A stretch of DNA of 64,000 nt from Laetmonice hystrix (Eukaryota). A program made the position numbers and the translations under genes. The notes below the pieces were generated by a model. The model worked only from the letters and a program-made list of their open reading frames with translations. It made no database searches and was not told the DNA's origin. Below, piece after piece: positions 3,707-64,000 of the stretch (its first letter is position 1; each line of letters begins with the position of its first letter). The stretch is from the NCBI GenBank assembly GCA_965235115.1, contig OZ249451.1, positions 10,044,001 through 10,108,000 on the forward strand, in the 5' to 3' direction.

Positions 3707-3841
3707 NNNNNNNNNNNNNNNNNNNNNNNNNNNNNNNNNNNNNNNNNNNNNNNNNNNNNNNNNNNNNNNNNNNNNNNNNNNNNNNNNNNNNNNNNNNNNN
3801 NNNNNNNNNNNNNNNNNNNNNNNNNNNNNNNNNNNNNNNNN
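3707..3841. other. Assembly gap (135 N)
   Basis: Run of n. Confidence 1.
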
Positions 3842-6232: not shown

Positions 6233-7672
6233 CCCCTGCCTTCCTCCTGTCACCCTGCCTTCCTCCTGTCACCCTGCCTTCCTCCTGTCACCCTGCCTTC
6301 CTCCTGTCACCCTGCCTTCCTCCTGTCACCCTGCCTTCCTCCTGTCACCCTGCCTTCCTCCTGTCACCCTGCCTTCCTCCTGTCACCCTGCCTTCCTCCT
6401 GTCACCCTGCCTTCCTCCTGTCACCCTGCCTTCCTCCAGCCACCCTGCCTTCCTCCAGTCACCCTTCCTTCCTCCAGTCACCCTGCCTTCCTCCTGTCAC
6501 CCTCCATTCCTCCTGTCACCCTGCCTTCCTCCAGCCACCCTGACTTCCTCCTGTCACCCTGCCTTCCTCCTGTCACCTTGCCTTCCTCCAGTCACCCTGC
6601 CTTCCTCCTGTCACCCTGCCTTCCTCCTGTCACCCTGCCTTCCTCGTGTCACCTTGCCTTCCTCCAGCCACCCTGACTTCCTCCAGCCACCCTCGCTTCC
6701 TCCAGTCACCCTGCCTTCCTCCTGTCACCCTGCATTCCTCCTGTCACCCTGCCTTCCTCCTGTCACCCTGCCTTCCTCCTGTCACCCTGCCTTTCTCCTG
6801 TCACCCTGCCTTCCTCCTGTCACCCTGCCTTCCTCCTGTCACCCTGCCTTCCTCCTGTCACCCTGCCTTCTTCCTGCTACCCTGCCTTCCTCCTGTCACC
6901 CTGCCTTCCTCCTGTCACCCTGCCTTCCTCCTGTCACCCTGCCTTCCTCCTGTCACCCTGCCTTCCTCCTGTCACCCTGCCTTCCTCCTGTCACTCTGCC
7001 TTCTTCCTGCTACCCTGCCTTCCTCCTGTCACCCTGCCTTCCTCCTGTCACCCTGCCTTCCTCCAGTCACCCTCTCTTCCTCCAGTCACCCTGCCTTCCT
7101 CCTGTCGACCTCCATTCCTCCAGCCACCCTGCCTTCCTCCTGTCACCCTGCCTTCCTCCTGTCACCCTGCCTTCCTCCTGTTACCCTCCATTCCTCCTGT
7201 CACCCTCCATTCCTCCTGTCACCCTCCATTCCTCCAGCCACCCTGCCTTCCTCCTGTCACCCTCCCTTCCTCCCGCCACCCTCCATTCCTCCTGTCACCC
7301 TGCCTTCATCCTGTCACCCTCCCTTCCTCCTGTAACCCTCCCTTCCTCCTGTCACCCTCCATTCCCCCAGTCACCCTCCATTCCTCCTGTCACCCTCCCT
7401 TCCTCCTGTCACCCTCCCTTCCTCCAGCCACCCTCCATTCCTCCAGTCACCCTCCCTTCATTCTATCACCCTCCATTCCTCCAGTCACCCTCCATTCCTC
7501 CTGTCACCCGCCCTTCCTCCTGTCACATGCCTTCCTCCATCCACCCTCCATTCCTCCAGTCACCCTCCCTTCCTTCTATCACCCTCCATTCCTCCAGTCA
7601 CCCGCCCTTCCTCCTGTCACCCTCCCTTCCTCCAGCCACCCTCCATTCCTCCAGTCACCCTCCCTTCCTCCC
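6233..7672. repeat. 19-bp pyrimidine-rich minisatellite, ~75 copies
   Basis: Unit accctgccttcctcctgtc. The 19-aa period PCLPPVTLPSSCHPAFLLS in the ORF track equals three units. Confidence 0.97.
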
Positions 7673-18512: not shown

Positions 18513-19153
18513 CCTGTTGTAGTTGTAGTAGTAGTAGTAGTTAACAATCGGTCGATTTCTCAGTCGTTTCTTAAGGTATCGTAATGAAACTTGGTGGGAC
18601 TCTTGCTCATGGGCATAGCAACTTATTTTTATATGCATGACGTCATATGACGTACCGTCATAGAGTTATGACGTAATCAAAAGTTGGGGAAAATAGCTTA
18701 TTTCTAGAGTCCCTGGAGGAGCAGAACAAAATTTATTCATATCGGGGACCTTATCACTTAAGTGCCCATAACTCTGTTACTACATTTGACCCCTGACCTT
18801 TAACCTTCTTGAGATGTAAGTCATATGTCAAAAAGTGACAAAATTGTTTCACGCCCCACATTTCTGGTCAAATCGACCCCAAATTGATTTCAGGAAATCT
18901 CCATGGGGACCTTCAATGGGGTCCGTGTGGATAAAGCGCTGTGACCTATTTTAGGGGTACCACGTGGCATTGAAGTTGGGGTCATGGCCATTTTCAGAAA
19001 CAATTGGCTGTAACTTCTAAACGGTGAAAGATGGAGCCTTGGTTACTATTGAACATAAATAGGAAATCATATATGCTCTTTATTATATAATTTTTTTAGG
19101 TCACGTGACTATTTTTAAAAATTAGGGGGGAAAAATAAAAAAAGTGAAAAACA

Positions 19154-19219
19154 TGCCGAGTACCGGGATTGATCTCCGGACCTCTCCGATGCGAGTCGAA
19201 CACTCTTGACCATCGCCAC
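19154..19219 (-). pseudogene. tRNA-like (Ala-CGC-like) Pol III cassette inside the HINE, copy 1
   Basis: Minus strand gtggcgatggtcaagagtgttcgactcgcatcggagaggtccggagatcaatcccggtactcggca followed by tttttcactttttt; A-box-like, CTCGCAT loop-like and B-box-like (GGATCAATCCC) segments. The cloverleaf is imperfect. Confidence 0.5.
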
Positions 19220-20160
19220 TAAATTCTGACATGTGATTACAGGATTGAACTGGTACTGATTACTAAAGGATATTTTGTAATTGCATTCAAATAGACCAAT
19301 CCAAGATTTTTTAATAGATCAACTGTCTGTGACACCAAGATGGCTTCTCTAAAATCAATAGTTTTCATGCTATGGAATCTGAGAAGTGGCTTGGCACGAC
19401 AGTTTCCCAGTGTGCACTGCATCAGGGTTCACAACGTGTTGACAAGTGATGATAACCAGGGGGATGGGATCCCTGTATTGCTTCAGCAATCAGTGTTTCT
19501 AGTTATTATACCTGTTGTAGTTGTAGTAGTAGTAGTAGTAGTAGTAGTTAACAATCGGTCGATTTCTCAGTCGTTTCTTAAGGTATCGTAATGAAACTTG
19601 GTGGGACTCTTGCTCATGGGCATCGCAACTTATTTTTATATGCATGACGTCATATGACGTACCGTCATAGAGTTATGACGTAATCAAAAGTTGGGGAAAA
19701 TAGCTTATTTCTAGAGTCCCTGGAGGAGCAGAACCAAATTTATTCATATCGGGGACCTTATCACTTAAGTGCCCATAACTCTGTTACTACATTTGACCCC
19801 TGACCTTTAACCTCCTTGAGATGTAAGTCATATGTCAAAAAGTGACAAAATTGTTTCACGCCCCACATTTTTGGTCAAATCGACCCCAAATTGATTTCAG
19901 GAAATCTCCATGGGGACCTTCAATGGGGTCCGTGTGGATAAAGCGCTGTGACCTATTTTAGGGGTACCACGTGGCATTGAAGTTGGGGTCATGGCCATTT
20001 TCAGAAACAATTGGCTGTAACTTCTAAACGGTGAAAGATGGAGCCTTGGTTACTATTGGACATAAATAGGAAATCATATATGCTCTATATTATATAATTT
20101 TTTTAGGTCACGTGACTATTTTTAAAAATTAGGGGGGAAAAATAAAAAAAGTGAAAAACA

Positions 20161-20226
20161 TGCCGAGTACCTGGATTGATCCCCGGACCTCTCAGATGCG
20201 AGTCGAACACTCTTGACCATCGCCAC
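20161..20226 (-). pseudogene. tRNA-like cassette inside the HINE, copy 2
   Basis: Same sequence as 19154-19219 with a few substitutions. Confidence 0.5.
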
Positions 20227-20453
20227 GCAATTCTGACATGTGATTACAGGATTGAACTGGTACTGATTACCAAAGGATATTTTGTAATTGCATTCAAATA
20301 GACCAATCCAAGATTTTTTAATAGGTCAACTGTCTGTGACACCAAGATGGCTTCTCTAAAATCAATAGTTTTCATGGTATTGCCCCTATGGGGGTTAGGA
20401 TTAAAAAGTTGACCCAATTGACCCAATTTTAAAAATAAAAAAAGTGAAAAACA

Positions 20454-20519
20454 TGCCGAGTACTGGGATTGATCCCCGGACCTCTCCGATGCGAGTCGAA
20501 CACTCTTGACCATCACCAC
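20454..20519 (-). pseudogene. tRNA-like cassette inside the HINE, copy 3
   Basis: Same sequence, within an internal duplication of the second HINE body. Confidence 0.5.
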
Positions 20520-22165
20520 GCAATTCTGACATGTGATTACAGGATTGAACTGGTACTGATTACTAAAGGATATTTTGTAATTGCATTCAAATAGACCAAA
20601 CCAAGATTTTTTAATAGGTCAACTGTCTGTGACACCAAGATGGCTTCTCTAAAATCAATAGTTTTCATGCTATGGAATCTGAGAAGTGGCTTGGCACGAC
20701 AGTTTCCCAGTGTGCACTGCATCAGGGTTCACAACGTGTTGACAAGTGATGATAACCAGGGGGATGGGATCCCTGTATTGCTTCAGCAATCAGTGTTTCT
20801 AGTTGTAGATAAAACGTGATCACCTGACGGCAGTTTACCATTACGTGGGTGCCACATACACATGTAGTCGTTTGTAACCGGGCTTTGTATTCAGATAAAC
20901 TGGCATCAAGATCCGGAACTGATTCATATTTATGAATACAATGTTTTAGTGTATGTTTTTTGTGGTGGCATTAATTTTGAGAGAGAAAGAGAGAAAAAAA
21001 CATGGATAGGATCTGTAAACATTATTCATTTGGTTGGGGAGGGCTGAATGAATAGTGGCGATATAAAAACACTTTTTAAGACATTCTTTCTCGCCCCTGC
21101 GTTGTGTTGACACATGTTCGTGGCGAGGAACTCAGGGAATGCAACCACAATCTCCTACCGTGGACAGAGCATCGCTATTGTCATGATAAGGACTTGGCAA
21201 GTGTTCAGTTTACTTAGGAGTTATTATTTGTTTCACCTAGCATTATTCACTTACTGAGGTATATAACGGGTAAAGCAGACGCCTTGTGTAGTAGGCGGTC
21301 AATTATATACATGTACAATGTATATATGGAGACTGTCACCTGAGAATCAGCCCCACTGTGCCTACAAAGTATCCGATTACAAAGGTAATATTTGAATGCC
21401 GACCTTGAGCTGAAGGGTAAACGCAGGGAAATCTAAGTTAAAACATTCAGTTTCGTCTCGTACTCTCAACAGGTTTCCATTTTAGTGCCTCGTGTTGCCA
21501 GACATTGTACTCGCTTCCATTTTCGACATGAAAGTGGGTGGGGATAAGAAAAAGTGCTTAGACTTAGAGTGCTCACAGATACCACCCATACGGGTGCAAT
21601 AGGCGCACGGCACGAGCAGTATTATGTGAGGGGTGAAGCTGTGCTTCATGTATGTTGGACCAAGGTATTACCGAGTTAAAAATAACGCTGAAAGATGACT
21701 CCCACTACAGTGCCTCGTCATGAGCCAACATTAGACATTTCACGGAGTCTTACATCATTGAGATAACTCCCCGAAACCTATGGTGTTACGAGCATGTGAC
21801 CTTCGACCTCCTCAATCCAGCTCTCACCATTCCACTGTTTTTTTAAGGAGCGAATTTTTGAGGTTTATACATGTATTATGTTTTTGGTCATATAATTGAG
21901 TAGATGGCGCCAGATGGGGGGGGGGGGGGCTCTTCGGAAGCGCACCACAAGAGGAATGCACTTGGCAGACCCAGTAAAAACCGTGGATTGGCGGAGGATG
22001 TACTGCATTGGTCAAATATTTCCTTTGACTGAGAGAGGAGAAAAGGGTTCTTCCCTAAAAGAGAAAAGACTGGGGAGAAATTACTTCCCTGTACAGGTAC
22101 AGGAGACTGGACTGGGGGGGGGGCATAGTCTTCTAAAGATGACTTTCCACTGAGGACATTTAGCA

Positions 22166-32100: not shown

Positions 32101-32578
32101 ATGTGTGTACAGCGCCAGGGTTGAATGCCCTTGGAGGCTGGAAACTCCGCTTCAGATCAGAGACTAGACTTGATACAGTTATTATGGGGTCTGACAGAAA
32201 GCAAACTGGATCTGCAGCCAGTTAGGGCCTGTCAGTACTGGCAGGTGAAACACGTCAGTTCTGTGTAAACATGCATTGTATTCCCAAACATGAATACAAT
32301 CGATGTAATATTACACTGCAATACATAAACAGATTTATGTTTTATATGTTGATACTTGGATACAATCTGTATACTTTATATTTCCAGACGTCAGTCATTG
32401 CGTTGTCTTTGCAAACACCCAGATGTTCTGTTTATTCAGTCATCAATGTACAGTCTATCAATCTGTCTGCAATCTGTACCTTAACTCCAATACTCATGCC
32501 TTAAATTTCCAGACATCACAATACATTCTGTGCCTAATATTTCCAGACATGACTAGAGTTTGTGGTTTATATTTGCAG

Positions 32579-32761
32579 ACATCAATGCGGTGAAGCAGTT
32601 GGCGGCCATGGAGGCTGTAGCCACAGACGGCGTCTGTCCATCGTGCGCCTCACCTTACGATGGAGGCAAAAAACGGCGCCTCATCGACACGGCCTGCAAC
32701 CATGAGCGCTGCTTCTCCTGCATGTTCAATTCTAATGAGTGTCCTCTCTGTGAAACAGACA
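32579..32761 (+). CDS. rols: Coding exon with RING-type zinc-finger motif of a rolling pebbles/TANC-family scaffold protein
   Basis: atatttgcag| acceptor and |gtaagt donor; 183 nt, phase 1-1; encodes DINAVKQLAAMEAVATDGVCPSCASPYDGGKKRRLIDTACNHERCFSCMFNSNECPLCETD. The CPSC..P.D.GKKRRLIDT.C.HERC.SCMF....CP.C pattern matches my recollection of the Drosophila Rols7/invertebrate TANC N-terminal RING. Confidence 0.82.
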
Positions 32762-34080
32762 GTAAGTTTACATAGTCAGTGTCCTCTCTGTGAAACAGAC
32801 AGTAAGTTTACATAGTCAGTGTCCCCTCCGTGAAACAGACACTGAGTTCACCCAGTCGGTATCCCCTTTATGAAACATACAGTAAGTTTACATAGTCAGT
32901 GTCCCCTCGGTGAAGCAGACAGTAAGTTTACATAGTCAGTGTCCCCTCGGTGAAGCAGACAGTAAGTTTACATAGTCAGTGTCCCCTCTGTGAAGCAGAC
33001 AGTAAGTTTACATAGTCAGTGCTCCCTCGGTCAGCTCTATGTAAACTCCATAGTCAGTGTACCTTCGGTGAAGCAGACAGTAAGTTTACATAGTCAGTGT
33101 CCCCTCGGTGAAGCAGACAGTAAGTTTACATAGTCAGTGCTCCCTCGGTCAGGTCTATGTAAACTACATAGTCAGTGTACCTTCGGTGAAGCAGACAGTA
33201 AGTTTACATAGTCAGTGCTCCCTCGGTCAGGTCTATGTAAACTACATAGTCAGTGTACCTTCGGTGAAGCAGACAGTAAGTTTACATAGTCAGTGTACCT
33301 TCGGTGAAGCAGACAGTAAGTTTACATAGTCAGTGTCCCCTCGGTGAAGCAGACAGTAAGTTTACATAGTCAGTGTACCTTCGGTGAAGCAGACAGTAAG
33401 TTTACATAGTCAGTGTCCCCTCGGTGAAGCAGACAGTAAGTTTACATAGTCAGTGTCCCCTCGGTGAAGCAGACAGTACGTTTACATAGTCAGTGTACCT
33501 TCGGTGAAGCAGACAGTAAGTTTACATAGTCAGTGTACCTTCGGTGAAGCAGACAGTAAGTTTACATAGTCAGTGTCCCCTCGGTGAAGCAGACAGTAAG
33601 TTTACATAGTCAGTGTCCCCTCGGTGAAGCAGACAGTAAGTTTACATAGTCAGTGTCCCCTCGGTGAAGCAGACAGTAAGTTTACATAGTCAGTGTACCT
33701 TCGGTGAAGCAGACAGTAAGTTTACATAGTCAGTGTACCTTCGGTGAAGCAGACAGTAAGTTTACATAGTCAGTGTCCCCTCGGTGAAGCAGACAGTAAG
33801 TTTACATAGTCAGTGTCCCCTCGGTGAAGCAGACAGTACGTTTACATAGTCAGTGCTCCCTCGGTCAGGTCTATGTAAACTACATAGTCAGTGTCCCCTC
33901 GGTGAAGCAGACAGTAAGTTTACATAGTCAGTGTCCCCTCGGTGAAGCAGTCAGTAAGTTTACATAGTCAGTGCTCCCTCGGTCAGGTCTATGTAAACTA
34001 CATAGTCAGTGTACCTTCGGTGAAGCAGACAGTAAGTTTACATAGTCAGTGTCCCCTCGGTGAAGCAAACAGTATAAGTT
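32739..34080 (+). repeat. 40-bp minisatellite (~34 units) made of exon end plus 5' splice donor
   Basis: Unit gtgtcccctcggtgaagcagaca|gtaagtttacatagtca; the first unit overlaps the last 23 nt of the coding exon; five variant units contain ctatgtaaactacatag. Confidence 0.96.
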
Positions 34081-35305
34081 CACCCAGTCAACCGTCTGCC
34101 TACCCATTATCCCACGACTTAATTTAATTTTCTCACGCCACGTTTTGCTTATTGTGGGCACGAACTACCCCATGCCCAGAAAAAGCTTTGATTGTAGAGC
34201 GCTTACATAATTCGCGTTCAATTCTGAATTATTAACACGATACTGAACACGATGAAAGAATAGCCATAAATGCGTTATGATATTGCCATCAACATAAAAT
34301 GATTGGCCGTAAGTCTTGTGAGCATTCTGATTCTAGCGCAGAGCAGTGTTGACAAATCTCGATGTATTGGAGACCACTCATGAAGTTTACGCAACATTAC
34401 TTGGATTTATGTGTACAACGTCAAGTAGTATTTTATTTATGATGTCAGGGTGATATTCCCACAACGAGGGCATATGGTTTCTATGGTGTTTCTGTCATTA
34501 TCTCTTTCCTTACTTTTCCAAACCTTACCGAGACGTATTTCACTGTACATTATAAAGCTTCTGTTTGTTGAGGAAATGAGTAGAACATCTGTCGATAAAA
34601 CTGCACCAAGCCAGACTAAACCTTACGCTGAGAACATAGTAGTTCACATTGCTTCGTTTTCTAATCAATACTCATTTTATCTGTAGTAAGCCTGAGCAAG
34701 CCAGGAACAAATTATTCTGAGACGCTAAATGAGGTTCTATTACTAGCCGGGAGTTAGCTTACACTTGATTGAAATACGCATAAATGTACTGAAAAAAGTC
34801 TGTGCTTGACTCCATCCAACTTTCCGAGAGAAATGGTTAATGAGGTATACTACTGCATAGTGTAGTGTTTGGGAATTCTTTGAAAGCGACTGATTAAATA
34901 AGCGGCCAATAACGATGAGGTTAAAAGACCTTCCCTATTTAAAATCTTAAAATATCCTGTTTAATTTTTAGAGGTGAGGCTGAGAAAAATCGCATTCAGA
35001 AGTCATTAAGTGGCGATAGTACGCCCGTAGTAGAGTAGAAGACTGCCATATCATAAAAATGTTCTATAGTCAGAGCAAGAAAATTATGAAAAGTGTATGA
35101 AAACCCCCATTTATATAAAGTATAAGAAGTTTGGATCTTAATAGAATTTACATTTTCCCCCTAAAAAAGGGGCAATTCTCATGGAAAAATGTGCAACGAT
35201 ATGTTTGATGCAATCTGAAGGATCTACATGTATAGTGCAGCCTTTTTCCTGCTGTAATCGTTGTCGCGATGATTAACATGGTTGCGATGTATGAACTATT
35301 TCCAG

Positions 35306-35524
35306 TGTATTCGGGAGGCGCGAACAGAGCCAACCATTTCCGACAGCAAAGTGACACGGCCATACTCTCACACCACCGACCTAAGATGAAAACAAACGGC
35401 CATTTCACCACCTACATGCAAAACCGTCTGGAGGGAACCTTCCCACTACTGGAGGAAGACGTCAACATGGACAACACGGTCCCGCAGTCTAAAGTCAACA
35501 CACTGGCGTCACCTAGTCGCAGAG
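35306..35524 (+). CDS. rols: Next coding exon of the rols/TANC-like gene
   Basis: ctatttccag| acceptor and agag|gtagga donor; 219 nt, phase 1-1, in frame with the RING exon; encodes MYSGGANRANHFRQQSDTAILSHHRPKMKTNGHFTTYMQNRLEGTFPLLEEDVNMDNTVPQSKVNTLASPSRR. The KTNGHF..YMQ motif is recalled from rols-like proteins. Confidence 0.72.
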
Positions 35525-36614
35525 GTAGGAACTATACTCCTTAATTCTAATGTCACTTGGGTGCAGTGGTTATCATGAGAGTTATCACTTCATTCTCTCG
35601 GTCCTGGAGCTGCAGGGATAAAATCTTACGTAAAGTGCGGCCGTCAGTGACTTCTGCTTGATGGATGAAGACACCTCAGGTAGTATTTAGTGCCAGAGAC
35701 GTTTTAGTGTATTGTCTTTGGTGTCACGTAATATTTCCTACTCAATCTCAGTTTTTCTGTGATACAGTCCTTTATTGGAAGCGATATTTTGGTTATTCAT
35801 ATACAACATTCTTTTTAGACGACCCGCATATGTAGATGTTCCTGTAGATATAAGTAAACAGCATGAAAGTTGTTAACGAAGGAATTCATTTACATCTTAG
35901 AGACTAGAAAAAGCTACGAATGATACAGGTAACGGCGAATGATTTATTAGGGAAGTAAATACACCATACCACGGAGGAAGCTGAACACATTTTGTTCTCC
36001 GAATATCAATAGTTTTTATCGTCAGATTCTCTCCATATTTGTGGATCTCATTACCGACATGTATGTATATATACAGTTTTTTTCGTTGAGCATCTCAGTG
36101 TACATGGAAATATGGTCCAATTTGAAAACAGGAAGTAATTAACAGCCATAGATTTACAGTTATATTAAAGAAAACTGAGCTGGCCAAGCCTTGAATCATT
36201 TATAGAATTTGAGGAATTGCTGATAGGTAAAAATGAAACAAACTATATTATTGGATATATAAATGAGCAGTAATGACAAGTGACGAATGACGCACAAGGT
36301 TGACCTACTACGTTGGTCTTGCCGCCACTTCCTTGAGTACATGATGCTAGAATAATTTTCCACCTTTCCGAGCCAACACGACCCGTGTGCAGATACTCTG
36401 CTAAACTTTATGTTAAACTTGGCCTCAACACCCGTCGGCAACTTCCAAGTGGTGCACAAGTAACGCCAACATGTGGAAAAACATTCACGCAACGCCATTA
36501 GCCTTTCCCCTGCCAACCATCAGGCGTCGCCTAGCGCTCGTAGTTACCATACCGACCACCAGACGGCTCTAGTGGTGGTGGCGCTGGGGGCGGAAGAGCG
36601 GCGGGCAGATGTTG

Positions 36615-38355: not shown

Positions 38356-38498
38356 NNNNNNNNNNNNNNNNNNNNNNNNNNNNNNNNNNNNNNNNNNNNN
38401 NNNNNNNNNNNNNNNNNNNNNNNNNNNNNNNNNNNNNNNNNNNNNNNNNNNNNNNNNNNNNNNNNNNNNNNNNNNNNNNNNNNNNNNNNNNNNNNNNN
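38356..38498. other. Assembly gap (143 N)
   Basis: Run of n, followed by short (ta)n/(tc)n. Confidence 1.
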
Positions 38499-59500: not shown

Positions 59501-59754
59501 TGACCCCTAGAGGAGAGTCTATCACCGAGTCAGATCAGTTATCAGCACTCTCATTCATGAAGATTGTTCGTTCACGTCCATACACGACCGGCGTAACGTT
59601 AGACGGCCATGCCAGGTACGTGGTTTGGGGGAAGTCTGGTCTAGTCTATCCTATAACTATAGAAATCCCTTTGGTTTATCACAATGTTGGCAGCAAGAAG
59701 ATATTATTTTTGTCTATACCACGCTGGGGTCAGCAGGGGGGGGGGGGTCAGTTT

Positions 59755-60980
59755 GACCACCAGACAACCATACCTACCACCATGCGTTGTCCACGGATGG
59801 TTCAGGTTGACCACCAGACAGCCATACCTACCACCCTGGGTTGTCCACAGCGAATTCAGTGTGACCACCAGACAGCCATACCTACCACCCTGGGTTGTCC
59901 ACAGAGGGTTCAGTGTGACCACCAGACAGCCATACCTACCACCCTGGGTTGTCCACGGACGGTTCAGGTTGACCACCAGACAACCATGCCTGCCACCTGG
60001 GTTGTCTACAGAGGGTTCAGTGTGACCACCAGACAACCATACCTACCACCCTGGGTTGTCCACAGAGGGTTCAGGCTGACCACCAGACAACCATGCCTAC
60101 CACCCTGTGTTGTCCACAGAGGGTTCAGGCTGACCACCAGACAACTATGCCTACCACCCTGCGTTGTCCACAGAGGGTTCAGGCTGACCACCAGACAACC
60201 ATACCTACCACCCTGCGTTGTCCACAGAGGGTTCAGGCTGACCACCAGACAACCATACCTACCACCCTGCGTTGTCCACAGAGGGTTCAGGTTGACCACC
60301 AGACAACCATACCTACCACCCTGGGTTGTCCACAGAGTTTAGTTTGACCACCAGACAGCCATGCCTACCACCCTGGGTTGTCCACAGAGGGTTCAGGCTG
60401 ACCACCAGACAGCTATACCTACCACCCTGGGTTGTCTACAGAGGGCTTAGATTTACCACCAGGCAACCATGCCTACCACCCTGGGTTGTCGACAGAGGGT
60501 TCAGGCTGACCACCAGACGGCCATACCTACCATCCTGCGTTGTCCACGGATGGTTCAGGTTGACCACCAGACAGCCATGCCTACCACCCTGGGTTGTCCA
60601 CAGAGAGTTCAGTGTGACCACCAGACAGCCATACCTACCACCCTGGGTTGTCGACAGAGAGTTTAGCGTGACCACCAGACAACCATGCCCACCACCCTGG
60701 GTTGTTCACAGAGAGTTTAGTGTGACCACCAGACAACCATACCTACCACCCTGGGTTGTCCACGGAAGGTTCAGTGTGACCACCAGACAGCCATACCTAC
60801 CACCCTGTGTTGTCCACAGAGGGTTCAGGCTGACCACCAGACAACTATGCCTACCACCCTGGGTTGTCCACAGAGGGTTCAGGCTGACCACCAGACAACT
60901 ATGCCTACCACCTTGCGTTGTCCACAGAGGGTTCAGGCTGACCACCAGAAAATCGTGTCCACCGCCCTGGGTTGCCCACA
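59755..60980. repeat. 54-bp minisatellite, ~22.5 copies
   Basis: Unit gaccaccagacaaccatacctaccaccctgggttgtccacagagggttcaggct; 18-aa period in the ORF track. Confidence 0.97.
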
Positions 60981-61639
60981 CCCTCTTTTCCGATCCTCCT
61001 GTTAAGGGGTCAATACTACTTACAGTACATGTTAAATAGATGTGCTAGAAATCGTCACCATATAATTATATAAACAGGTCACATTACATGGCACAGATTG
61101 AGGGCAATATCGATTGATTTCTTATTGGTAATCCAGCCAAAGACCAGTCGCCTCATCTTGGTGAAGTACCTGATAGTTCCACGGGTGATAGCCACAACAA
61201 CCCAAACAGAAATCTCAGTCCAACTGGTGTGCATGGTGCTGAGATTTTAACATGTGTACCAACAGCGATCAATAGAAGTCCATTGGTTTGATCCCAGTTT
61301 ATTTTTGTCATCTGCACCGAACAGATCCTACGTTCATGTAAGAGAACGTTCCAATTTATTTTTCTGGACAGACTTTGTGGAGCTCTGCTTAGCTGGCGCT
61401 GAGCCATTGCTCATTTACTTGTTGGCCAAATCGTCGACTTCCATGGTCGGAACGGACATGGCTACATATTGATTCGTGTCAGAGATATGCGGTAGGATTG
61501 CTGAGACTTCCCTTGGATCATGATGAATGGATGTAGTGGGGGCAACAGTGTCAGTGGCCGACGCCGCAGTCTGGGCCCTCTCCGGGGTCACCAGGTGCAG
61601 AGTTGATGGGCCCTTTACACAATAATGCCATTAGGGCAA

Positions 61640-62853
61640 CAAGTAGTATCAACCATCAGACAAGGGGCTCACAAGTAGTATCAACCATCGGACAAGGGGC
61701 TCACAAGTAGTATCAACCCTCAGACAAGGGGCTCACAAGTAGTATCAACCATCGGACAAGGGGCTCACAAGTAGTATCAACCATCAGACAAGGAGCTCAC
61801 AAATAGTATCAACCATCAGACAAGGGGCTCACAAGTAGTATCAACCCTCAGACAAGGGGCTCACAAGTAGTATCAACCCTCAGACAAGGGGCTCACAAGT
61901 AGTATCAACCATCGGACAAGGGGCTCACAAGTAGTATCAACCATCGGACAAGAGGCTCACAAGTAGTATCAACCATCGGACAAGGGGCTCACAAGTAGTA
62001 TCAACCATCGGACAAGGGGCTCACAAGTAGTATCAACCATCAGACAAGGGGCTCACAAGTAGTATCAACCATCAGACAAGGGGCTCACAAGTAGTATCAA
62101 CCATCAGACAAGGGGCTCACAAGTAGTATCAACCATCGGACAAGGGGCTCACAAGTAGTATCAACCATCGGACAAGGGGCTCACAAGTAGTATCAACCCT
62201 CAGACAAGGGGCTCACAAGTAGTATCAACCATCGGACAAGGGGCTCACAAGTAGTATCAACCATCAGACAAGGAGCTCACAAATAGTATCAACCATCAGA
62301 CAAGGGGCTCACAAGTAGTATCAACCCTCAGACAAGGGGCTCACAAGTAGTATCAACCCTCAGACAAGGGGCTCACAAGTAGTATCAACCATCGGACAAG
62401 GGGCTCACAAGTAGTATCAACCATCGGACAAGAGGCTCACAAGTAGTATCAACCATCGGACAAGGGGCTCACAAGTAGTATCAACCATCGGACAAGGGGC
62501 TCACAAGTAGTATCAACCATCAGACAAGGGGCTCACAAGTAGTATCAACCATCAGACAAGGGGCTCACAAGTAGTATCAACCATCGGACAAGGGGCTCAC
62601 AAGTAGTATCAACCATCGGACAAGGGGCTCACAAGTAGTATCAACCATCGGACAAGGGGCTCACAAGTAGTATCAACCATCAGACAAGGGGCTCACAAGT
62701 AGTATCAACCATCGGACAAGGGGCTCACAAGTAGTATCAACCATCGGACAAGGGGCTCACAAGTAGTATCAACCATCGGACAAGGGGCTCACAAGTAGTA
62801 TCAACCATCGGACAAGAGGCTCACAAGTAGTATCAACCATCAGACAAGGGGCT
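61640..62853. repeat. 32-bp minisatellite, ~38 copies, with 480-bp higher-order duplication
   Basis: Unit caagtagtatcaaccatc(a/g)gacaaggggctca; rare variants recur 480 bp apart. Confidence 0.97.
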
Positions 62854-64000
62854 GACAGTAGGGATAACAGAAGGATCTGATTTATGATAAAATAGCTGGG
62901 GGAAAATATCCTGTTGCTTGTGGCATGCCACAGTGATTGTGTTAATGACATTGGTTAATGAAATATCTGGAGGTACTAGATGACGCGGAAGAGTTTGTAT
63001 CTGTTGATATTGCTATCTGTGCCTGAAGGCGGAGCTATATTATGTAGAGTCTGAATTAGAGTTGCGCTGTTCGCGGGGCGGGGGGAAGTCCTCAGTGTGG
63101 AAACCTTATACCCTCACGGGTCAAGTTTTCATATTGATTCACATGGTTGAGCTATGGTTAACTGTCAAAACTGCCCTGGAGAATCTCAGCTAGCCTGAAA
63201 ACATTTGCCAGCCAGGAACGTCTTCCTGGAATCGGTTCATTCCTTGAAATAAATTGCCTTGTACCCCAAGGGTAGGCATCATGGTCAGGGAGAGAGTGGT
63301 TGTAGCCCGGTGAATGAGTTTATAAATGTGGGGATGTAGGGTATATGGATGCGGGAGGGGGTGAAACACTCATGATCATCTAAAATATTCGGGACCGCAC
63401 AAACTTCCTGGACTACAGGGATTGTTTTTTGTATTTTTATGTTGGATATTTTCCATTTTCATTGGATGGATATTAATTTAGTCATTAGTTGAGGAATTGA
63501 AATTTAAGGAAAAGGATGAAAAATTAATTACAATGGCAGTAGTAAGCGATAGGTAGACATACGTAGTAATTACTAGGGCAGATGATGTTTCATCACCGAC
63601 CGTTAATTAGGTCATGTGACATGAAACTTCCGGCAGGAAAGGGCATTTGAGAGGATGGGGATCAGACCTGTTAACTTATGTTGTCGTGTTTCCATGGAGA
63701 CAGAAAGAGAATACAGCGGACCTCATCACATTACACCAAACTCTTGTCAGGCCACCTGACGGTAGGGTTATTTATAACATGAACGCTGCGAGGTACAGCT
63801 AGGTTAGCAAATCAAAAATTTGACGGGTGTCGTCTTTTCTTAGGTTTCCTTATGTCAGGTAGAAGGCTGAAAAATCTTCTTTCAGCGGCAGCTATGTTTA
63901 TGGCTCAAGCTGGAAGTCCAATTGTTGTTTTTATTATTCAATTAAAAATGAAGAGTTGTCTGTAGTTTAATTGGAATAGCGAAAACTCTCATCAAGGAAA

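Follow-up and report, generated by a model that had tools for sequence, protein, structure and literature searches.

Known minisatellites spanning a splice junction

A first monomer lying across an exon-intron boundary characterizes minisatellites described in the human genes F7, 6-16, CBS, LMNB2, and PDGF (PMC1557585). The F7 repeat lies in intron 7 and consists of 5-9 units of 37 bp (Borensztajn et al. 2006, PMC1557585). According to the literature cited in that paper, 6-16 (IFI6) carries 25 pseudo-sites (Turri et al. 1995), intron 13 of CBS contains a 31-bp VNTR of 15-20 units, and LMNB2 and PDGF have 100-bp and 81-bp repeats, respectively. The authentic, most upstream donor is the only one used in F7 and, as cited there, in LMNB2 and PDGF, and two further donors besides the authentic one are cited as being used in 6-16 and CBS (PMC1557585).

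The rules of this choice were studied in 50 F7 constructs. The pseudo-sites proved to be functional, the most upstream usable site always won, the choice was shifted only by a pseudo-site with a perfect consensus, and exon skipping increased as the first usable donor was moved away (PMC1557585). An older study of duplicated sites by another group had the opposite polarity, as the F7 authors note (PMC1557585). For CBS, the reference list of the same paper includes reports of an association between the 31-bp VNTR and enzyme activity, and the title of one of the cited studies states that a substitution carried by the second repeat stops multiple alternative splicing (Yang 2000, via PMC1557585).

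The RING exon and its productive junction

The window, that is, the whole stretch of 64,000 nucleotides of the Laetmonice hystrix contig OZ249451.1 analyzed in this study, contains a similar arrangement at the end of a coding exon. The main features are listed in Table 1.

Table 1. Features of the RING exon, its flanking introns, and the junction-spanning minisatellite (positions in the window)
Feature	Position	Strand	Comment
Decayed copies of the exon's acceptor (3' splice site)	32363..32584	+	4-5 copies, pyrimidine tract plus CAG/ACATCA
RING-finger exon of a TANC2-like/rolling-pebbles-type gene	32579..32761	+	183 nt, phase 1 at both ends
Minisatellite monomer 1	32738..32777	+	spans the exon-intron boundary; working donor ACA/GTAAGT, GT at 32762-63
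TAG	32773..32775	+	first stop in the exon frame when the first donor is unused
Monomers 2-34	32778..34087	+	24 GTAAGT pseudo-donors and 2 GTACGT
38-nt units (positions listed)	33018, 33136, 33214, 33852, 33970	+	
Non-repetitive rest of the 2544-nt intron	34088..35305	+	
Next coding exon	35306..35527	+	found by tblastn of orthologues; conserved HRPK-x-KTNGHFT-x-YMQ motif

The exon at 32579-32761 codes for the N-terminal RING of a TANC2-like/rolling-pebbles protein. Its translation is a C3HC4-type RING with all eight zinc ligands present; the Pfam domain zf-RING_5 matches it with 24 bits, which is under the cut-off, and the solved structures nearest to it, at weak E-values, belong to unrelated RINGs. 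When 1.84 billion representatives were searched in full with HMMER, the exon obtained 73 matches at E<=1e-10. The full-length proteins among them (1400-1800 aa) contain a TANC1-like lid and winged-helix, an NPHP3-type NTPase, ankyrin repeats, and TPRs, and are named TANC2-like or, in insects, "rolling pebbles" in their sources. The closest annotated relatives of both exons are nemertean, chiton, and brachiopod proteins with 53-66% identity.

When 32761 is joined to 35306, the split codon A/TG encodes Met, and the spliced peptide ...CPLCETD-MYSGG... aligns without gaps across the junction with the proteins of Tubulanus, Lineus, Liolophura, Octopus, and Lingula, the invariant KTNGH included. The N-terminal RING is thus followed by the conserved linker motif of the TANC/rolling-pebbles proteins. 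Both boundaries of the RING exon match in position and phase in the genomic loci of Lingula (L002) and Tubulanus (L005), where the same A/GTAAGT junction is found in the same phase and the acceptor is at the equal position; these orthologous junctions were used to set the exon end. As the spliced peptide is collinear with the orthologues and both relatives have this junction in their DNA, the ancestral, productive donor is the first. No tandem repeat occurs at the orthologous junction of Lingula or Tubulanus, and the array is therefore a lineage-specific gain. In a third relative (L003), no tandem repeat was found within the 280 nt that could be examined. Metagenome scans with the exon peptide and with a 26-nt piece of the unit returned no matches, and the peptide resulting from read-through had no candidates in a collection of 5.8 billion proteins; the protein collections searched contained no entry corresponding to this locus.

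The upstream coding exon of approximately 19 codons was not detected by tblastn in the window, and the P-loop, lid, winged-helix, ankyrin, and TPR parts of TANC had no tblastn match there either, including the 28 kb downstream. The missing downstream exons are expected, because the next conserved large exon of Tubulanus lies about 27 kb further downstream, and the remaining TANC exons may be situated beyond the end of the window. Compared with seven orthologues, the RING itself (32635-32760) contains one inserted residue and departs from them at several positions that are otherwise invariant. For instance, IDT-CGHERCY is changed to IDTACNHERCF and CH-PFDKG to CASPYDGG, with the eight zinc ligands kept. 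Such changes may be due to relaxed constraint, or the locus may be a paralogue that has diverged.

Anatomy of the array

TRF identifies a single tandem array at 32738-34074 with a period of 40, 33.7 copies, and 86% matches, and splitting by hand at the AGTG anchor yields 34 units at 32738-34087, which make up 52% of the intron. Unit 1 is composed of the 23 final nucleotides of the exon (32739-32761), GTAAGT (32762-67), and 11 nucleotides of the intron; unit 2 is identical to it at 40 of 40 positions. By exact count, the array contains 25 GTAAGT hexamers, the working donor and 24 copies. The context is ACA/GTAAGT in 24 of these (the real donor and 23 copies) and TCA/GTAAGT in one, and GTACGT is found at 33476 and 33836. 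No donor is present in the last unit, in unit 3 (CTGAGT), or in any of six units of 38 nt. Outside the array, GTAAGT occurs eight times in the remaining 62.7 kb of the plus strand. A 20-mer of the unit has 27 occurrences against 0.01 expected, far above chance, and within the 64-kb window the unit is confined to the array. The locus hence has two features of the described class, a head-to-tail array of a unit of roughly 10-100 nt inside an intron (here, period 40 and 34 units) and a first monomer that holds the exon-intron boundary, with the authentic donor reiterated downstream.

A preliminary description of this DNA had interpreted the unit as 23 exonic nucleotides, gtaagt, and 11 intronic nucleotides amplified from the exon-intron junction, and the anatomy of unit 1 (32738-32777) and the exon end fixed by the orthologues agree with this interpretation. 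Its hand count of 24 downstream donors and two GTACGT was correct within one. The translation, the library matches, and the orthologous boundaries likewise confirm its view that the exon is real and encodes a RING, and the 32761-35306 join together with the Lingula and Tubulanus junctions upholds the statement that the first donor alone yields the conserved protein. Read-through past this donor does reach the TAG at 32773-75 in the exon frame, and each downstream donor sits behind it, as had been described. The acceptor AG occupies 32577-78, so the exon begins at 32579 and not at 32578.

Internal structure and history of the array

The bulk of the array is formed by two interspersed 40-nt variants with three and five differences from unit 1. 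In the six 38-nt units, an inverted copy of the bases that follow has taken the place of the donor-bearing segment, resulting in the palindrome CTATGTAAACTACATAG. This variant looks like a template-switch mutation that was later propagated through the array. Unit 3 (32818-32857) and unit 34 (34048-34087), close to the two ends of the array, share the 3' half GTTCACCCAGTC, where the bulk has TTTACATAGTC; the former is probably the older, ancestral start of the intron. Units 1 and 2 are chimeras with an exon-type 5' half and a bulk-type 3' half. Thus exchange within the array rewrote the intron at approximately +9 to +14 relative to the working donor and duplicated the new version, and the in-frame TAG belongs to the bulk variant. 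The overwriting of the intronic half of unit 1 by the bulk variant and the interspersion of variants represent the typical internal structure of a minisatellite. The donor hexamer is lost in about 9 of the 34 units and is retained no better than neighbouring positions. Hence the donors appear to show no sign of selection, although homogenisation limits what can be concluded from hexamer retention.

The 11-mer CGGTGAAGCAG, present in every bulk unit, has one occurrence outside the array, at the start of the exon (32588-32598, Val-Lys-Gln codons), and the match arises from two of the three substitutions by which bulk units differ from the exon end. A chimeric unit derived from the exon start was considered and rejected: the exon end already matches CGGTGAAGCAG at 9 of 11 positions, and the codons at the exon start are conserved coding sequence. 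The shared 11-mer could be an unexplained coincidence or a short templated change or conversion.

Reiterated acceptor and related duplications

At the other end of the exon, the 3' splice site is likewise repeated, in a decayed form. Copies of the acceptor are located at approximately 32363-91, 32424-48, 32488-516, and 32522-50, and the working copy is at 32554-82, the final three being spaced by 32-34 nt. The 14-mer ATTTCCAGACATCA occurs four times in 205 nt with at most one mismatch; when up to two mismatches are allowed, the number expected over both strands of the whole window is 0.76. The reiteration is backed by the repeat family D1/D2/D4 and by the alignment, and was not scored by TRF, the copies being too decayed. 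If used, the two nearest copies would add 32 nt, leading to a frameshift, and 66 nt, introducing an in-frame TAG.

Other duplications involve RINGs of this type. In a 1-kb metagenome contig from ENA (L001, positions 482-752, protein P0002), the end of the orthologous RING exon is triplicated in units of 93, 84, and 93 nt. The triplicated segment covers the last ~86 nt of that exon and the donor G/GTGAGAT, all three donors are in frame, and the second copy is devoid of the Cys-Pro of the last zinc-ligand pair. This triplication is independent and comes from another, unrelated and GC-richer organism. An 887-aa FYVE/C2H2 protein (P0001) has four whole-domain tandem copies of the same RING type, and a 399-aa protein (P0035) has a duplicated segment comprising the start and the RING.

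Minisatellite load of the window

Tandem arrays with a period of at least 10 cover 11,347 of the 64,000 bases of the window (17.7%), and 17 arrays are at least 150 bp long, approximately one per 3.8 kb. Among these are 76 copies of a 19-nt unit at 6234-7671, 23 copies of a 54-nt unit at 59754-60980, and 38 copies of a 32-nt unit at 61639-62861. If arrays were placed at random and tolerated, a given junction would have roughly a one-in-six chance of lying in one of them. At this minisatellite density, the overlap with the junction therefore needs no special cause.

At 19118-19588 and 20125-20816, the window also contains repeats several hundred bases long, in which both strands have similar open frames and which include a 293-nt tandem duplication at 20138-20673. 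They are possibly an interspersed element; no tRNA or Rfam match was found in these segments by ARAGORN and Rfam, and the Rfam and tRNA scans of the whole window were empty. Runs of N occupy 3707-3841 (135 bases) and 38356-38498 (143 bases).

A probably tolerated, mostly silent array

We suggest that the array is probably tolerated, neutral or slightly costly, with mostly silent pseudo-donors, and is not a regulatory device. A 40-nt piece across the 3' end of the RING exon would have been tandemly duplicated, giving rise to a lineage-specific intronic minisatellite that was then expanded and homogenised by the usual slippage and unequal exchange. The 183-nt exon would be defined from its acceptor, and the spliceosome would take the first suitable donor, 32761/32762. 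The 24 downstream copies are pseudo-donors and would be largely ignored, because the first suitable donor is taken once the exon is defined, as in F7 IVS7. It is plausible that the nearest copies are used at a minor level. Such a leak would above all involve the donor at 32802, since its 40-nt context is identical to that of the real site and its use would extend the exon to only 223 nt. The leaked transcripts would keep the TAG at 32773, and NMD would be expected to remove them. This view of donor usage applies mammalian precedents to a spiralian genome, and the leak could be larger than in F7, given the strong GTAAGT with six contiguous U1 pairs and the identity of unit 2 over 40 nt. As a possible reason for the silence of the copies, RNA accessibility was dropped, because the real donor and the copies are alike in predicted folding: the real donor has an unpaired probability of 0.002/0.011 in local folding with 240-nt windows, and the copies are similar. 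The F7 authors also report that accessibility does not separate the real site from its copies (PMC1557585).

The main alternative of the preliminary description was that the array length could tune gene output or that the array could act as a U1 sink, with a tolerated neutral amplification seeded at the junction as the fallback. It is this fallback that the evidence favours. In the tuning model, a sizeable share of transcripts would use the downstream donors and end as NMD targets or as a RING-only stub, and the length and composition of the array would set the output. The 24 pseudo-donors with the -3 to +6 sequence of the real site, the identity of unit 2 over 40 nt, and the in-frame stop ahead of all of them are in line with this model, as are the use of the first two pseudo-sites in 6-16 and CBS and the association of the CBS 31-bp VNTR with enzyme activity, both as cited in PMC1557585. 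A premature stop upstream of a later junction, as in switches that couple alternative splicing to NMD, is indeed present (the TAG at 32773-75, with at least one exon junction downstream); conservation of the alternative sites in relatives, the other mark of such switches, is not observed, as the Lingula and Tubulanus loci are without the array. Known usage is, however, limited to the first one or two copies, so output would not scale with array length, and none of the copies is used in F7, LMNB2, and PDGF. We consider tuning unlikely. A U1-dependent effect independent of site choice, in which the array would gather U1 snRNPs on the nascent intron and, for instance, block premature cleavage and polyadenylation or retain the transcript, is favoured only by the density of GTAAGT, 25 in 1.3 kb versus 8 in the other 62.7 kb of the strand. 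Yet the array is not conserved in the Lingula and Tubulanus orthologues, an abundant snRNP could not be titrated by a single locus, about a quarter of the units have lost the hexamer with no signal of selection, and all sites are predicted to be mostly base-paired. We regard such an effect as very improbable. Neither proposal finds support in the sequence; the array is absent from the two orthologous loci, the window is saturated with minisatellites, and the human precedents, in which none of the repeated donors or just the first two are used (PMC1557585), also argue against them.

The pseudo-sites on both flanks of the exon allow for a two-sided decoy, in which the reiterated acceptors and donors would compete and favour skipping of the exon, giving a RING-less TANC like the vertebrate proteins. 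The exon has 183 nt and phase 1 at both ends, so its skipping keeps the frame. In support of this model, moving the first usable donor away increased exon skipping in F7 constructs (PMC1557585), a Drosophila Rols7 construct without the RING region rescued like the full-length one (PMC2171639), and the RING is changed here at positions invariant in seven orthologues. Nevertheless, the true donor is intact and is met first, a layout that gives normal inclusion in F7, and the acceptor copies are old and decayed; the model is entirely speculative, and we regard it as very improbable. Only slightly greater credence, still low, can be given to the possibility that the repeated splice sites on both sides of the RING exon, together with the independent triplication in the metagenome contig, manifest a real propensity or function. 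In the case of a propensity, the splice-junction sequence of the exon could seed tandem duplication. Alternatively, the flanking decoys would determine the proportions of transcripts that contain the RING, lack it through in-frame skipping, or are destined for NMD, and array length would be a heritable dial on a scaffold protein. The reiterated acceptor and the independent triplication are not predicted by a purely random model, and they count against the silent reading. Finally, there is a very slight chance that the length and order of the array are an assembly artefact or that the gene is a decaying paralogue, which would make effects on splicing moot. Long near-identical arrays are hard to assemble and two N gaps exist elsewhere in the window, but the interspersion of distinct unit variants is orderly. 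The unusual RING substitutions, the one-residue insertion, and the lack of detected TANC exons in the remaining 28 kb could point to a dead gene; however, both exons are open, none of the eight zinc ligands is lost, splice sites as well as phases are conserved, and missing exons are expected from the position of the next conserved exon of Tubulanus, about 27 kb downstream.

Given transcripts, the locus would be a stringent natural test of the choice made by the spliceosome among many identical 5' splice sites, with 24 strong GTAAGT copies spaced by 40 nt, the second donor in an identical 40-nt context, in a non-mammalian animal. It could show whether the upstream-most rule of F7 extends outside mammals and to strong donors. 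As it stands, it is one invertebrate example of a class described since the 1990s, and regulation is not thereby demonstrated.

Comparison with known systems

Like the TANC1/TANC2 and Drosophila Rolling pebbles (Rols7/Antisocial) scaffolds, the gene has an N-terminal RING exon followed by the KTNGHFT exon of the invertebrate TANC2-like proteins. It differs from them in that only two exons are seen in the window and in the extra residue and several substitutions of its RING.

Among the closest parallels to the array is F7, in which the first monomer also lies over the boundary and the authentic donor is followed by identical intronic pseudo-donors, with a similar unit length (37 versus 40 nt). 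However, F7 has 5-9 units, 4 exonic nucleotides in the unit, and the weak donor UGG/gugggu, whereas this locus has 34 units, 23 exonic nucleotides, and the strong GTAAGT; the exclusive use of the upstream site in F7 is experimental, whereas here it is predicted. The 6-16 gene (IFI6 exon 2) is similar in having about 25 pseudo-donors after the authentic one, a copy number of the same order. Its unit is reportedly 12 nt long, so that alternative donors are in frame and add residues, and two of its pseudo-sites are said to be in constitutive use. In the array described here, the unit is 40 nt long and each alternative donor is behind a stop.

The VNTR of CBS exon 13/intron 13 (Yang 2000, Lievers 2001) spans the junction in the same way and is the precedent for an effect on output. 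The difference is in the second repeat, which carries a substitution in CBS, whereas here unit 2 does not differ from unit 1 and the GT is missing from unit 3. LMNB2 and PDGF likewise have 10-18 reiterations of the junction and make use of the authentic donor alone, although their units are much longer. The RING exon array thus adds an unusually large invertebrate example to a class already described in human genes.
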